From NCBI GenBank assembly GCA_020536535.1, contig JAHLWZ010000975.1, positions 1-34,906 on the forward strand: a stretch of DNA of 34,906 nucleotides, in the 5' to 3' direction. Under the pieces are notes generated by a model that was given only the letters and a program-made list of their open reading frames with translations, was not told the DNA's origin and did no database searches. The stretch is from Pelomyxa schiedti (lineage: Eukaryota; Protista; Evosea). Both the position numbers and the translations under genes were made by a program. The first letter of the stretch is position 1, and each line of letters opens with the position of its first letter. Positions 4,056 through 10,631 of the stretch are shown here, one piece after another.

Positions 4056-4141
4056 TTCTGTGTTGGCCGTTTTTCTCATTCCTCAGGGAAGGAATCTTTA
4101 ACTTATAAGGAAAAAATTGTTTTTATTATAAAGAGGGTCTA

Positions 4142-7100
4142 TTACATCCAAACAAATGCCAAAACAACAGCCAAAGAAACAACCCAAAGAGCCACAGTCA
4201 TGTGGAGACCCCACAATGACTGTCTTGGTACTGATAATCCCGTTGGGGTCTGGTTGTATCCCAACAGCTCAAATAGATACACTAGAGGCAGAAGCAGTAA
4301 CCTGACACAATACCTAGCCAGTGGGTGATGTGTAAGCCATAGTGCAAATGGTGGTGATGTGGCATAGTAGAGGTCTATGAATTTACGGCCCAGATAGTGG
4401 TTGTGTAGAGTTGTATCCCTGTTTGTTTTGTTTGTTATATGAAAAGACATGATTGATATAATTGAACCTGAAACGGCGAAGTGTGTTGATTCTTGGGTCT
4501 AGGGGTGACCCATAAGCAGCAGTGGCAATGAAGCAACCACCTCTTTTGGCTTTTTTCGCACTACATTTGTAGCTCATAGCCTGGGTGTGAAGAGAAAGTG
4601 ATTCCGGTGAATAATAAGAATCCTGCCCAAAGAGTAAGGAACGGATAGCGTAAGTATGTACTAACCTCAATTGTGGGGTCATATTCATCACAAAAAAGTG
4701 CTGCCCTCCTAAAAAAAAAAAAGGTAAGCAATGGCAGACAACATGGATGCAAGTACTTTGAAATACTCTCTATCTTCGCTGATTGTTCTTGCAGATCATC
4801 CATCACCGAGGAAGACGACGAAGTAGTGGTAGAACATTGTGGTGGAGGTGGAGGTGGAGCTGCTGCTGCAGAGCCAGATGGAGGCGGCGGCGGAGCGGAT
4901 TCAGATGGAGGAGGCATGTGTGAAGGTGTTGGTGTAGGTTGAGCTTGAGGTTTAGGTTGAGGTTGGGATTGAGGTGCAGGTGAAGGCTTGGGTGGAGCGG
5001 GGCTGGCAGCGGCACATGCCGCGGGGACTGGGATTGATCTCGCCATGTCCTTCTTTTGGTTCATGGCGCTTCCTGCTTTTCCTCTGCCTTTGGCATTCGA
5101 TTTCGGTGCTTCCTCACATTTAATGTCGCATTTCATGTCACATTTCATGTCACATTTTGGGGAATAGTCACATTTTTCCTCGCATTTCGATTTTTTCTTG
5201 GCTTTGTATTCGCGTTTAACGTCACACATCCCTGCTTCTTCTTTCATCTTGCTCAACCCTCTTGGAGCACCAGGAGCGCGACGGAACTCCATGTAATCAT
5301 CCTCCTCTTCACATTCTGAGTCAGAGCTGTCACTGGCACTGCCACTGCTGCTGCTACTCGACTTGCGTCTTTGCTTATATTTTTTTTTGCCACCACCCCA
5401 CGAGGAGCTTCTTGTATCAGCAGTTGTAGAGCCGCTGATTTGCCAATCTTTTTCCCATTGAGTGGTATTTTAGAATTCAAGGCCATACGAGGATTAGATG
5501 TGGACACTTTTCTAGATTTTTTGGTTTTTTTCCCTGGAGCCCAGTAATCAAACTCAGTGTGGTGGTAAGCCTTTGGGTACATTTTCCTAAGTCCATAATT
5601 AAAATGTGAATTTCCAGGCCGACCGTAGTACTACATTTCTCACCTGGATGAGACCACACTGACGGTGGTATTATAATGAACCTTCTTTATTTCCTTCCAG
5701 TTTGTGCAAAATGGAATTTCATCCACGCTTTCTGCTTTGTCTAACGTGGCAATAGGAGGTGTGGGTTTCATCTGTACTTCCCTAGTTCATGTTTTAAAAT
5801 AAAAAAAATAGTAATCATAAAAAAGACCTACCCTCTTTTCTCTGCTTCAGTTCTTTCCTGGATGCCATTAGGGTAATGTAGGATGATTCTTTTGGAATAC
5901 CTCAACGGCAATGAAACTTGTCAACGTGGTTGCTAAAGAATACCTCACACCAAGATCTATTATTTCACCTTTGCGCTACTGTGTGGTTACAAAGAGGTAT
6001 TCTGTCTCCCTAATACCTTTTCCCGTGCAAGTTCACTTGAGACATTGTCCTCAGCAAGGCTACTTTCCTCCCAGTCTCTGTGCAGAAAGAATTCTCAGTT
6101 TAATGTAATAATGCTGGAGATAACAGACCGAACAATAGCTCGGGCGCATAGCCTGTGAAGAGTGAGTCCATTTACAGTGTCACCAATGCTTGATGTTACA
6201 GTAGTGAGAAACTGAGCCCCAGTGTCACTTTCTTTGCCTTGGAGAGTAACCTTTGGGAGAAAGAAGTTTGTAATCACCAAATATAGGCGGAGACATACGC
6301 CATGGCAGTCAGCGTTAATAAAAGAATAAACAATGACTCTATCTCCAGAGAAAAGAGACATGACCTTTTGGGGGGCCTGTCTCGCTACAGAAGGAAATAT
6401 GGTAGCAGAAGAGGCACTCCCGCTTCCCCATTTTATTGCTATATCTTTCAAACAAGCTTGCTTACTTCTAGATATTTGACTTTGTACCTATGCAGTTAAA
6501 TTAGCAGAAAACGTTTTTAAGTCCAAGTTTACCTGTCCTCGGAGTGGATTTGATTTCGAAACAAATTCACAGGCACCACCTCCTAAACGGGCAAAGGACA
6601 TGAGGTTGTGTCGGTGTACTTCAGTACCAACACCAAGGGAGAAAACCCGGGTTTTACTGTGGGGATCCTGACAGTGATCAAGAATACTCTACAAAGTATT
6701 TAGCAGATAATTCAAGAGAATGATTACCAACCTTCATCACTTGTAGATCGTTGGCAATATCACCATCAGATATGATGAACAAGTTATAATTTGTTGAGCG
6801 TTGTTGAGCATCATTACTGTCCCGGGTGCACTCAATTTCTAGAAGAACACTTTTTAAAGCGGGCCAGAGCATACTCCCTCCCCAATTCGCTTGTAATTGC
6901 TTCAGGTCATTACTTAAATAAATAGCGTGGGGTGCATTGGTACCATGATATGGTTATGAGCTATGGACTGGGTTTCAGAGGTTTTTACAACGGAGGTGAG
7001 GAAGAGTGCTTCAAATGTGGATCCAAATGTTATTACATTGAATCGAGACATCATTGGTACCCCCCAAACTAGGCCGGTTATTAAGGAAGATGATATGAGA

Positions 7101-10100
7101 AGACACACGTAAGTTGAGGGAGACCTGTTTGCATTCGAGCAGACATGGCCCCATACTAGCAGATTGATCAATAAGTAGTATATCTAAGTTTTGGTTTAGA
7201 AAATATTGAATAAGTTAAAATTTTACACTCGGTATTGGAATCCACAGATTCACTGAGAGTTGGATAGAGCGCAACCATGGCAACATACTCCTCATTGGGA
7301 GGTATTGTGTTGTTGGATTTCGTTGGGGTTAAGGCATCAAGTTGAGGTGCCTTTTCCACCCACATGAATGGTGTGTGGCTATCACACATACGAACAAGGA
7401 GTATGAAGTCACTTGAAGGAGGTTCTGAAGGTATATCAACAAAGGGAATTCAAAGCAAGGAAAAACCATCAATCCAGAACAGTGTAGCTTTTCTTGGGGT
7501 TTGCTTGAATCTTATAGAATGTGTCGGACTCTCAATTTCGTGTATCACATGTGGCATATTGATGGCAATCTCCATTGAAAATGGACCCTGCATTGCGGGA
7601 AGGTGAAAATGCATATGTAAATAAAGCCATATAAACCCGATGCTCTGTCACACTAATGGTGCTTGTATTGTGCTGTGTGATGGGAGCAAGTGCACTGTGT
7701 TTTAACTGTCCGACAAGGTTCACGGGGCAAAGAAACTTCCTAGCCATGGCTTCGATTCCCAGTTCAGTAATGTCTAGTATTTCAATTGAAGGTAAGCGTA
7801 TTCTTAATATGGAGGCTGATACATGAGATCTTAATCACAACTTTCGTGTGTGGGGGGAGATTGCCCACTGAAACTGTGAAAACATTGGATTTGGCCTCAT
7901 CGAGTAGGTAGGCCCCATCGCCTCTCTTGATTGCTTCCTTGTATTCCTTATGAGCTTGTTCTTTCTCCTTTACTACTCCAATGACATGTTTGTCTGGATG
8001 CAGGTGAATGGGAAAGAAAAGTGCTCAATAATGCATACGGTTTATGAACGCCTCAAAGCCCACAACAGCTGATTTTTCGTCTAAAGGAAAAACATATTTT
8101 GCTTCTATTGGCGTTGCACTTGTGTTATGAAATTCTTGGAGGATGACGACTTCACCCACAAGATCTACACACATCAGTTGATTGAAACGCTAAGCATGCA
8201 TACCAATCAGCTTTGCGTGGATGCTAATAGCTTCCAGTGGTATGGGTTGCCCTGTGCTAGATACTAATCCACCTTTTTCTTTGGACTGGCGAACTAGTAA
8301 AATAATGTTTTGAACAAAAAAAAACATACAGCTGGCAATTCCGGCTTTGCTGCAGGGATGTTTGAAGAATCAACAATGACACGTTTTTTTATTCCAGAGA
8401 GTATACTCGAAAGTAAGGTGTTATCCTGCTGTTTTGGGTTCTCTGGCTTAAATCCAGAAATTTCCAGAAGGTACTGCACATGTTGTTGTGCAGTGGTATA
8501 GATCACATATCTTTGAGAATCAGTTTCCATTAGAAGAATAGAACTTGACACACTCATCGTCATCAAACTCGCTTTTTACTCCTGGTATTGCTTTTACACC
8601 GCGACAACTGTTAAAACTAGGAGGAGGCGCTGTCAAGGAGAAATCGTATTTATGTAAGTCCTTCACATTCCCAAGTGCGACCCGCGATAATAACAAGTAT
8701 CTACAGAGTAAAAAGGAAGGAAAGCTATTATGAGGGATGTCCACCAACATATAAGGTACCTGTTCCCATTTTCGTCTCCAGTGGTATATTTCAAGGCTGT
8801 TAGAGGATCATCACTGAAGTAAAGGCCGGCACCAAGGTTCCCCGCATTTGTCCGCTTTACACCAAGTGTTGTGGTAACAGTATGTGGAAGTAGCATTCCT
8901 CGTGAAAGAATTCCCAGCCAATTACCTTATGATATTAAGTTCCCGGCATTACATCTCCTATTTGAGTTAACCTATGGCAGAGCCGTGAAATAGGAGCCTT
9001 TCGTTACCGATGTCTGAATTAAAATTGGACAAGTCCATTTGCCTTGAAACTTTGAATACATTCGAAACACTCAAGTGAGGTGCGTGTTGTGCCACAAGAT
9101 CTAGAACATTTGAATATTCCAGAGTTTCGGATGGGAGAAGCTCAATTGTTGCTCCAAGGGAATAATAACTTGGGAGACAGTAAGGAATGTGTAAAAGGTG
9201 GAATTACAGTACAGCAAATCAACATCTCCAAGGTTGCCTGTTAGGTTGAATGAGCCTTCTCCTATACAGGACACATCCCGCATATCCTGAAGAGTGTCCA
9301 TCCAAGATAGTACCTGCTCGATAGTAGAGATATCCTGCATTGAAAATATCAAACGAAGGAAAATGTTCTATGTGAAAATATCTACATTTTGCATGTTTGA
9401 AGCTGTAGGAACAAAGGAAAAAAATTCAGTTGTAAGTTGATGTGCAACTGTGGGGTCCAGTTCACCATTTTCTATCGCCTTTGTAGAGTTTTAGTAGTCT
9501 TTCTAAAAGGCACAAACCAACCTGCTGAATCTTCCTCAGGACCACGGCAGCTTTTTCTATTTGAGGGGAAGAGAGCTGCTTCAAGGAGATATTCTTAGAG
9601 CAAAGTTGGATTGCTGATTCCTTCCAAAGTCCAATTAAGAGCTTTCTGACAGCAGCAGGCACAATGGAGGCACTTGCTGCATCCAATAAACCATCACGTT
9701 CAAAGTTAACATAACAAACAAATAAACAAACGAGTACCAGTGGTGTTTCCTATGTTGGCAGAAGATAGAAGGACCTTTTGGTATTTATTTTTGGTTGTCT
9801 AGGAATAGTAGTTTAGAAGAAAAGAAGGTGAACTGTACTTTAAGGTACTTTTTCTCTGAAGAGTGAACCGTAAACAGCCACGGCATCAGTCCATGAATGA
9901 ACATACATGTGATAGGGTTTTGAAATGTTTTTATCTAGTTGTTCCATTGTGCCCTTAAGTGTTACGATGCGAAAGAAGCGTGCTTGTCCATCCACTGTGC
10001 AATGTTATCTAAGAATGATGAAAGATGATAACCTCCAATGTGCAGTTCCATTAGCAATAAAGATGACCTCTTAACAAAGAACTTGGAGAGTAAATCTCTT

Positions 10101-10631
10101 CTCACAACAAAGTATGTCTGAGGGAAGTACGGTGCATCAATTGAATTTGCCTCATATTCCTACCAAAAAGGAGAAAGATAATGGTGAGCCTCCAGTTTAC
10201 AAGGAAATAAGATAGAAATATTCTCCGGTCAATATCCAAGCATAACGTCTGCACACCCTCACAACTCTATGTGCCCAAGTCCCAAGGCTAGCATTGCCTT
10301 CGAATTCAGAAATTTGGTGCATGTCATCGCGAATGACGTGGGCAGTGGGGTCCAATGGCACTGACACAGGCGGTGGCCCAACTGGGCCCGGCTCGACCAC
10401 CGGTGGGTCACACACCACGTCCTGCAACTCCGGGGGCGGCGGCAAGTTGGTGTCCCACGCCGCAGCCTCGTTGCACGACAACTTGGCGCGCTGGACCAGG
10501 TGGTCCCTCAGTCCCCCGCCCGGAGGAGCAAGTTGGGGTCGGGGCCTGGGCGGCGGCTTGTTCCACAGGGTCCTGGGCTGAAATCTTTTGACGACCACTA
10601 CCGGCCTGTTGGGCTTCAACCTCGACGGCAT
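4142..10631 (-). CDS. PARP4: PARP4 (vault PARP)-like protein: PARP regulatory + catalytic, VIT, vWA, low-complexity linker, Ras switch-I peptide, CFI-box-CTERM and C-terminal TM; multi-exon
   Basis: Spliced motifs RLLFHGSAIGNWLGILSRGMLLP, GVKRTNAGNLGAGLYFSDDPLTALKY, VALGNVKDLHKYDFSLTAPPPSFNSCRGV and EFDDDE|YVIY parallel the PARP4 catalytic domain. VIT: GGLVSSTGQPIPLEAISIHAKLI...VKEKEQAHKEYKEAIKRGDGAYLLDE...VFTVSVGNLPP. vWA: NLFIISDG and QAPQKVMSLFSGDRVIVYSF. Continuity into the 4142-5700 tail relies on predicted introns and is less certain than the core. Confidence 0.85.

Follow-up and report, generated by a model that had tools for sequence, protein, structure and literature searches.

The window analyzed here, 34,906 nucleotides of contig JAHLWZ010000975.1 of the anaerobic amoeba Pelomyxa schiedti to which all positions below refer, carries on its minus strand a gene whose product is deposited in GenBank as "PARP4 [Pelomyxa schiedti]" (KAH3743619.1), and the tail of this protein contains the effector loop of Ras. 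The peptide DEYDPTIEDSY is identical to residues 30–40 of K-, H- and N-Ras (PMC6254334), and, with F28 also kept, 12 of the 13 residues over Ras positions 28–40 match. Its core, YDPTIEDSY, which is the G2/switch I motif with T35, occupies residues 1519–1527 (YDPTIE itself, residues 1519–1524). The sequence evidence makes it highly probable that the peptide descends from a Ras gene, and we propose, tentatively and with a probability of about 0.4, that it is a working mimic of the Ras effector loop.

A Ras effector loop outside a GTPase

DNA coding exactly for YDPTIE occurs at 56 sites in the 52-Mb genome, as compared with none for a reversed control pattern. All 56 sites were read: the other 55, which belong to Ras, Rap and leucine-rich-repeat (LRR)-Ras genes, have beside them NKxD, a P-loop (or a motif like one), or both, and the site in KAH3743619.1 is the sole one without a surrounding GTPase. 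Local alignment of the loop with one of the amoeba's own Ras sequences gave a score of 51 (shuffled sequences, 21 ± 4; none of 2000 reached 51), and a phmmer comparison of residues 1495–1560 with all PDB sequences placed Rap and Ras chains first, with a best E value of 0.02. Because the 55 other sites lie in GTPase genes, two of which share the intron position described below, we regard a Ras origin as well supported. The contrary view, that the likeness arose by chance or convergence, could appeal to the shortness of the match and the silence of the Pfam Ras model; it would have to account for 11 consecutive identical residues plus F28, for an intron at a Ras intron position, and for the results of the shuffles and of the PDB search, and judged from the sequence it appears to be excluded in practice, its probability being negligible.

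No other part of Ras was found with the loop. Regular-expression searches of all 1667 residues detected no G1 P-loop GxxxxGK[ST], no DxxG and no NKxD, and no P-loop was present in three frames upstream of the loop. The Ras profile PF00071 had no match on the tail or on the whole protein, even at E ≤ 10. A Ras remnant following Y40 was considered and rejected, as no similarity to Ras was found in the tail beyond that residue. By its sequence, KAH3743619.1 is not a GTPase. A first-pass annotation of this DNA, made from the letters alone, had described the 12-of-13 match, with neither P-loop before nor DxxG after, as a piece of a real Ras gene captured between an intact PARP and a membrane anchor. 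That description agrees with what we find: the match is present in the spliced mRNA and in the GenBank model, the regular-expression searches and Pfam reveal no GTPase domain anywhere in the protein, the survey of 56 sites, the shuffles, the phmmer ranking and the shared intron speak for capture, and Pfam, motif and hydropathy analysis put the peptide between a PARP with an H-Y-E triad and a predicted C-terminal anchor.

The loop is assembled by splicing. Our RNA evidence consists of contigs from three runs (X1–X3) of one sample in one study, single-cell libraries labelled "protist metagenome," which were aligned over positions 4100–10099 together with a DNA contig (X4); the P. schiedti genome paper describes single-cell Smart-seq2 libraries and 7.4 introns per gene (PMC8887013). 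Fifteen GT..AG joints were listed, with introns of 41–57 nucleotides each. The joints that remove 4623–4665, 4709–4756 and 4419–4467 are present in each of X1–X3, and X4 is unspliced. The mature mRNA reads ...AKIESISK|RAALFCDEYDPTIE|DSYYSPESLSLHTQ..., continuing DSYYSPESLSL, in agreement with KAH3743619.1. Thus, the 43-nucleotide intron predicted earlier at 4623–4665 is removed in all three RNA contig sets, as had been supposed, and the stretch 4709–4756, which had been read as coding, is itself a spliced intron of 48 nucleotides. It was probably read through because its length is divisible by three and it contains no stop codon, so that the unspliced form is in frame. A single transcript from 10631 to 4142, also proposed earlier, is supported insofar as introns upstream of exon 4757–5447 are spliced in the same runs and that exon is one open frame with contig depth in every bin, but no single listed contig spans the gene from start to stop.

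The protein has the domains of a PARP4-like enzyme (Table 1), and its PARP domain is apparently active, as judged from the catalytic residues. No BRCT domain and no SNARE or Synaptobrevin domain was matched by Pfam in KAH3743619.1. Its spliced tail matches CFI-box-CTERM (NF041770) over positions 1–69 with 89 bits (cut-off 40) and an E value of 1.3e-25. In sequence searches the domain otherwise occurs at the C-terminus of prokaryotic proteins, and the amoebal version looks to have been acquired from prokaryotes; we found no paper on the CFI-box domain or on the tail of KAH3743619.1. A hydrophobic 19-mer (residues 1649–1667) ends the protein, a second hydrophobic stretch lies at 1609–1630, and the N-terminus is basic and proline-rich. 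A tail anchor with a transmembrane (TM) helix is predicted from hydropathy and an AlphaFold2 (AF2) model. The model, of residues 1490–1667 from a 16-row alignment, has a mean predicted local distance difference test score (pLDDT) of 81 and shows a helix at 1492–1517 (pLDDT ~90) that ends ...RAALFCD, then the Ras loop as coil (pLDDT ~50–68), then a confident helical CFI-box bundle and the terminal TM helix, at residues 155–177 of the modelled segment. The loop, some 30 residues ahead of the CFI-box and TM anchor, would in this model be an exposed linear motif that follows a helix, much as switch I follows alpha-1 in Ras.

Alignment of the tails of KAH3743619.1 (P0072) and of three related proteins described below (P0073, P0003 and P0021) indicated that amoebal CFI-box proteins stop at the end of the TM helix, and that bacterial CFI-box proteins continue past it with a basic tail (RRR, KKK). 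Given this difference, the CFI-box probably faces opposite sides of the membrane in amoebae and bacteria. The amoebal tail resembles that of a eukaryotic tail-anchored protein, and we infer that the CFI-box, the Ras loop and the enzyme are cytosolic.

Elsewhere in the protein, the linker between the vWA domain and the loop contains, at residues ~1370–1400 (window 5100–5200, minus strand), a short Cys/Lys repeat, KCEEKCDYSPKCDMKCDMKCDIKCEE, and after it a long proline-rich stretch; from its sequence the repeat could be metal-binding or mere low complexity.

Table 1. Features of the KAH3743619.1 gene (positions in the window) and domains of its product (residues of P0072)
Feature	Location	Strand	Evidence and remarks
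Whole gene, ATG to stop	4142..10631	(-)	Codes for the 1667-aa KAH3743619.1 (P0072); the MPSRLKPN start is the open reading frame at 10631
PARP catalytic (377–547), VIT (607–717) and vWA (870–1033) exons	6532..9203	(-)	Pfam on exons and on P0072; genomic limits approximate
691-nt linker exon: Ser/Lys-rich, KCD repeat, Pro-rich, helix ...MDDLQEQSAKIESIS running into the micro-exon	4757..5447	(-)	Open frame; RNA contigs; AF2 helix 1492–1517, pLDDT ~90
48-nt GT..AG intron 5' of the micro-exon, T12 tract before AG	4709..4756	(-)	Joint 4707->4756, cut +1, X1–X3
43-nt micro-exon coding (K)RAALFCDEYDPTIE, ~Ras residues 26–37	4666..4708	(-)	Phase 2 in, phase 0 out; RNA joints on both sides in X1–X3; GT..AG borders; in P0072
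43-nt GT..AG intron that splits the Ras-like peptide at E37|D38	4623..4665	(-)	Joint 4621->4665, cut +1, X1–X3; begins GTTAGTAC, ends GGGCAG
Exon opening DSYY (Ras D38–Y40), 26-residue spacer, CFI-box positions 1–22 (CFIATAAYGSPLDPRINTLRRFR)	4468..4622	(-)	NF041770, E 6.6e-8
49-nt intron within the CFI-box domain	4419..4467	(-)	RNA joint; NF041770 halves on either side
Last exon: CFI-box positions 24–69, amphipathic/hydrophobic stretch, predicted terminal TM helix (1647–1667), stop	4142..4418	(-)	NF041770, E 2.5e-10; hydropathy; AF2 helices, pLDDT ~90
PARP_reg	residues 262–340		Pfam
PARP catalytic domain, PF00644	residues 377–547		89 bits
H-Y-E triad	H421, Y461, E530		In LLFHGS, GLYFSD, DDDEYVIY; motif location
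VIT, PF08487	residues 607–717		119 bits
vWA, PF13768, MIDAS DQSAS	residues 870–1033		41 bits

The intron position and the search for a donor

Intron a of vertebrate RAS genes lies between E37 and D38. The intron that splits the loop in the KAH3743619.1 gene has the same position and is in phase 0, as is intron a (PMC9882654). Two of the amoeba's own Ras-family genes, L034 (C68) and L055 (C613), likewise have an intron at E37|D38. The first-pass annotation had relied on the coincidence with the vertebrate junction; junction and phase are as it described them, but the shared position is a weaker argument than was assumed because switch-I introns occur in this genome at five or more positions. 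Among the amoeba's Ras-family genes, 15 sites have an intron after Y40, nine within codon 39, six after D38 and three in R41, and 20 are without an intron inside four codons. Both L034 and L055 have tiny switch-I exons (that of L055 is 20 nucleotides long and codes for xYDPTIE), and since they share both the position and the small exon size, a genomic Ras fragment with such an intron is a plausible donor. We also note that four genes, L055, L063 (C795), L070 (C866) and L079 (C1082), are LRR-Ras fusions with very small switch-I exons and with altered P-loops that contain an extra residue (GGGGVGSKS, GDGGIGAKS, GSGGIGTKS).

The genome contains no second copy of the 221-nucleotide region and no near-identical DNA. 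Over an 18-nucleotide core the loop DNA matches the Ras paralogues at a mean of 14.7 positions (best, 17), and the paralogues match one another at 14.6 of 18; over 33 nucleotides the best match to an own Ras paralogue is 25. With no second copy and no paralogue closer than background, there is no gene to name as the donor. The capture may be old, or else the donor may have been lost or be unassembled (the assembly is ~82% complete by BUSCO; PMC8887013); by its sequence the capture does not look recent.

Paralogues and homologues with a CFI-box

Four genes of P. schiedti code for a CFI-box. PARP and VIT domains lie upstream of it in three, those on C975 (KAH3743619.1), C193 (P0073) and C4 (P0003), and P0003 shares 55% of its residues with P0072 and 52% with P0073. 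The fourth, L083 (G000:C476:74044-77190), has a VIT domain and no PARP match, and its segment before the CFI-box is Ser/Cys/Tyr-rich with no recognizable motif. The position of the intron in the CFI-box of the C975 gene is kept in C4, in C476 and in a homologue from a metagenome (L095, below), whereas the CFI-box of C193 is unsplit.

At the place where KAH3743619.1 has the Ras loop, the C4 protein has a different piece: a Synaptobrevin R-SNARE (PF00957; 46 bits, E 3.5e-12, profile positions 3–54), which directly precedes the CFI-box and lacks the synaptobrevin TM segment. It lies at ~1101–1301 of L085 (G000:C4:426996-430142), that is, at residues ~1440–1500 of P0003; just past the R-SNARE motif, a 42-nucleotide intron and a longer one are both in frame. 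The helix before the CFI-box of the C193 protein has a weak, partial Pfam SNARE match (E 0.038) and no match in the PDB. An ancestral Qc-SNARE helix common to C975 and C193 was considered and found to be unsupported, 219 of 2000 shuffles reaching the alignment score. A further protein, P0021 (L100), from a 3520-nucleotide GC-rich metagenome contig (JGI 3300048575), has a proline-rich linker and a eukaryote-style CFI-box tail anchor, and its helix ...EMCCDRLDTNHT... resembles that of C193 (10 of 2000 shuffles reach the score).

Two PARP-VIT-vWA-CFI-box homologues, L095 and L098, were found in a metagenome assembly (ENA ERZ21831265) and are 42–50% identical to the P. schiedti paralogues. Their contigs have a GC content of 37–40%, introns of ~35–41 nucleotides and eukaryotic housekeeping genes. 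A nucleoporin encoded on L098 shares only ~36% identity with that of P. schiedti, and hence the organism is distant from P. schiedti. In L095 (9826-10134, ctg80713l) the frame that leads into the CFI-box reads ...YRQKSGTFFVGKQLLLVLIAGREEYSGYRQMYWQRGYG... and aligns without gaps to Ras Y40–G77, with the Y40–A59 spacing kept. This degenerate beta2-beta3/switch-II stretch (AGREEYSGYRQMYWQRGYG), known from DNA alone, is fused directly to the CFI-box. Its switch-II part is identical to Ras at 10 of 19 positions, with a score of 53 that none of 2000 shuffles reached (21 ± 4). In the PDB all 43 of its 43 matches at E ≤ 10 are N-, K- or H-Ras, with alignment to about residue 90; the E values are individually marginal (best, 0.17). 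Two splice choices are possible, and both keep the switch-II part. L098 has no similarity to Ras or to SNAREs before its CFI-box; a supposed decayed switch I there (FEMDPP) was not significant. A third contig, L101, is 98.9% identical to L095, and three of the eight mismatches fall inside the Ras-like stretch. A test for selection based on this pair was dropped because the single-base indels are typical of assembly error.

From sequence comparison, then, the position before the CFI-box would seem to be a slot for modules in this PARP4-like family, filled by an R-SNARE in C4, by switch II in L095 and by switch I in C975. Phylogenetic analysis, in which the L095 and L098 sequences were stitched from tblastn pieces and may bias the tree, gave a strong five-gene clade (100/99) that is weakly resolved inside, with the P. 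schiedti paralogues together (81/88). A clade of C975 with L095 was disfavored (approximately unbiased test, p-AU 0.026) and one of C975 with L098 was not rejected (p-AU 0.07). Two possibilities present themselves, one old capture of Ras ~28–90 with subsequent losses or replacements, or two captures at the same spot.

Searches for other carriers of the loop were negative. A HMMER search with the last exon against 1.84 billion representatives retrieved CFI-box tails only, without a Ras-like motif. Besides the three P. schiedti paralogues, a word-index search with P0003 retrieved a truncated Mastigamoeba model and distant PARP4s, and no orthologue with the motif. Searches with the 228-aa tail and the 51-aa exon returned bacterial CFI-box proteins only, or nothing, and two back-translated DNA patterns of the loop had no match in JGI metagenome contigs.

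What the loop may do, and how it compares with known systems

We suggest that exon shuffling carried an internal Ras gene fragment, including its E37|D38 intron, into the C-terminal part of a tail-anchored PARP4 paralogue, and that what survives of it is the effector loop only (Ras 28–40), split over the 43-nucleotide micro-exon and the next exon. The loop, flexible and acidic, would lie exposed at the cytosolic side of a membrane, where genuine Ras is also located, and selection could have preserved it as a short linear motif mimicking switch I of Ras or Rap. Such a motif would dock a reader of switch I (an effector, a GTPase-activating protein, a guanine-nucleotide exchange factor or a Ras-directed enzyme) beside the vWA and PARP domains, by which the docked partner could be bound or ADP-ribosylated. 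Retention by selection, and with it any binding of a partner, is suggested by the fact that 12 of 13 residues are intact where the flanks past Y40 are unrecognizable as Ras and no donor is detectable, by the exposed position of the loop in the model, and by the presence of interaction motifs in the same slot in relatives. Several observations weigh against this proposal. A six-frame, exon-wise search of the genome, which is weak for split genes, detected no RA or RBD domain. An isolated 13-mer reproduces the original poorly, having neither the nucleotide-dependent folding of switch I nor the greater part of strand beta-2. The Ras remnant of L095 has the appearance of decay, which fits a relic as well as a function, and no orthologue with the loop motif was found by which to gauge its conservation. 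Moreover, the argument from an old capture fails if the donor has been lost or lies outside the ~82%-complete assembly. A caveat on the argument from preservation is that EYDPTIEDSYRK and AGQEEYSAMRDQYM have been singled out as the two invariant Ras signatures (PMC9882654), and only invariant signatures are recognizable at all.

This bias in recognition is one of the points in favor of a neutral relic, which we consider to be nearly as likely as a working mimic. The Ras fragment would then lie inert in the tail, its micro-exon retained solely because the CFI-box anchor must stay in frame, and the loop would look perfect either because its capture was fairly young or because nothing of Ras but an invariant signature can be recognized. 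The micro-exon is indeed needed for the reading frame, Ras genes in this amoeba are very numerous and rich in micro-exons and so offer many chances for a fragment to move, the second Ras remnant (L095) is degenerate, with its 10 of 19 identities in switch II, and varies between near-identical contigs (although single-base indels there resemble assembly errors), and the search for RA and RBD domains yielded no partner. Keeping a frame, however, demands length and not sequence, and with no donor at the nucleotide level a loop that is 12/13 intact beside non-Ras residues is not what uniform neutral decay would give. The need for the frame could also be read as a splice switch, in which inclusion of the exon yields the anchored protein, skipping yields a soluble, frameshifted form that ends 16 codons on, and the Ras content is incidental. 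Forty-three is not a multiple of three, and skipping, as computed, leads to ...ISKILIIHRNHFLFTPRL-stop with loss of the CFI-box and TM helix. Yet each of the three RNA contig sets includes the exon, with no skipped form among the joints listed (contigs drop rare forms), and a switch of this kind would leave the preserved Ras sequence unexplained; we think it improbable.

The first-pass annotation had favored an integrated decoy, in which the loop is bait for bacterial Ras-directed enzymes that, by cutting or modifying it, set free or activate the PARP-VIT-vWA portion; the paralogues and homologues with SNARE or Ras pieces would then form a panel of baits. Both Ras switch I and SNARE motifs are well known as targets of bacterial effectors, and RRSP, for example, cleaves Y32|D33, inside the same Ras sequence (PMC6254334). 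Three family members have three different target-like pieces at one position, and a decoy would suit an amoeba full of endosymbionts, Pelomyxa being known to harbor intracellular prokaryotes (PMC10579272). Since the bait lies between anchor and enzyme, a cut would release the enzyme. Against this, many Ras-directed enzymes recognize Ras in its folded form, the protein has no signalling or death domain besides the PARP, we found no precedent in the literature for integrated decoys in amoebae, and the R-SNARE and tail anchor of C4 are equally well explained by plain SNARE-type targeting. A decoy of this sort seems to us unlikely, and there is an equally slim chance that the Pelomyxa-type tail-anchored PARP4-like proteins as a family are membrane sensors with an exchangeable bait cassette (switch I, switch II or R-SNARE), each version copying something that intracellular bacteria like to target, and that an attack on the bait would free or turn on the PARP-VIT-vWA portion.

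If the loop is functional, as we propose for an effector-loop mimic, it would be a natural Ras-mimicking peptide displayed at a membrane by an ADP-ribosyltransferase, and a handle for readers of switch I in an amoeba with more than 50 Ras-type genes. To our knowledge, no endogenous protein other than a GTPase is known to have an isolated Ras effector loop, and a literature search for such a loop in a non-GTPase protein found none. Like switch I of Ras and Rap1, the loop has Y32, T35, E37, D38 and Y40 and a phase-0 intron after E37, and, as modelled, it follows a helix and lies near a membrane. It differs in that KAH3743619.1 has no G domain (P-loop, switch II, NKxD or nucleotide), continues after Y40 with YSPES rather than RKQV, and is a 1667-residue enzyme. 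With the vault PARP (PARP4/VPARP) the protein shares the PARP regulatory and catalytic domains with H-Y-E, the VIT domain and the vWA domain, in the same order. It has no BRCT domain by Pfam, and the MVP-binding C-terminus of the animal protein is replaced by the linker, the Ras loop, the CFI-box-CTERM domain and the predicted tail anchor. The C4 paralogue (P0003, 1617 residues) has a 52–55% identical scaffold, the CFI-box and the tail anchor, and its short foreign module is an R-SNARE and not a Ras loop. L095 has the same layout, with a Ras-derived stretch before the CFI-box, except that it keeps a degenerate Ras ~40–90 without switch I. Taken together with the R-SNARE and switch II of these two relatives, the loop suggests that one position has repeatedly taken up pieces of proteins of membrane signalling and trafficking.

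In plants, integrated decoys are known from immune receptors of the nucleotide-binding leucine-rich repeat (NLR) class, such as the WRKY domain in RRS1 and the HMA domain in RGA5. KAH3743619.1 resembles these receptors in having a piece like a pathogen target inside a larger protein with an output domain; theirs are whole folded domains with shown effector binding, whereas the piece in this PARP is a loop of 13 residues that resembles a target in sequence. Were the bait-cassette reading true, immunity through integrated decoys would exist outside plants as well, here with ADP-ribosylation as its basis. The repeated uptake of pieces at one position is a clean case of micro-exon shuffling, possibly with a molecular bait as its outcome, and the loop, if it is only a relic, is still a well-documented, RNA-supported example of a gene fragment captured with its intron. 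The origin of KRAS4A by exon capture provides a precedent for the movement of individual Ras exons through duplication and insertion into introns (PMC9882654); in that case a Ras exon entered another Ras gene, whereas the recipient here, the gene for KAH3743619.1, is unrelated to Ras.

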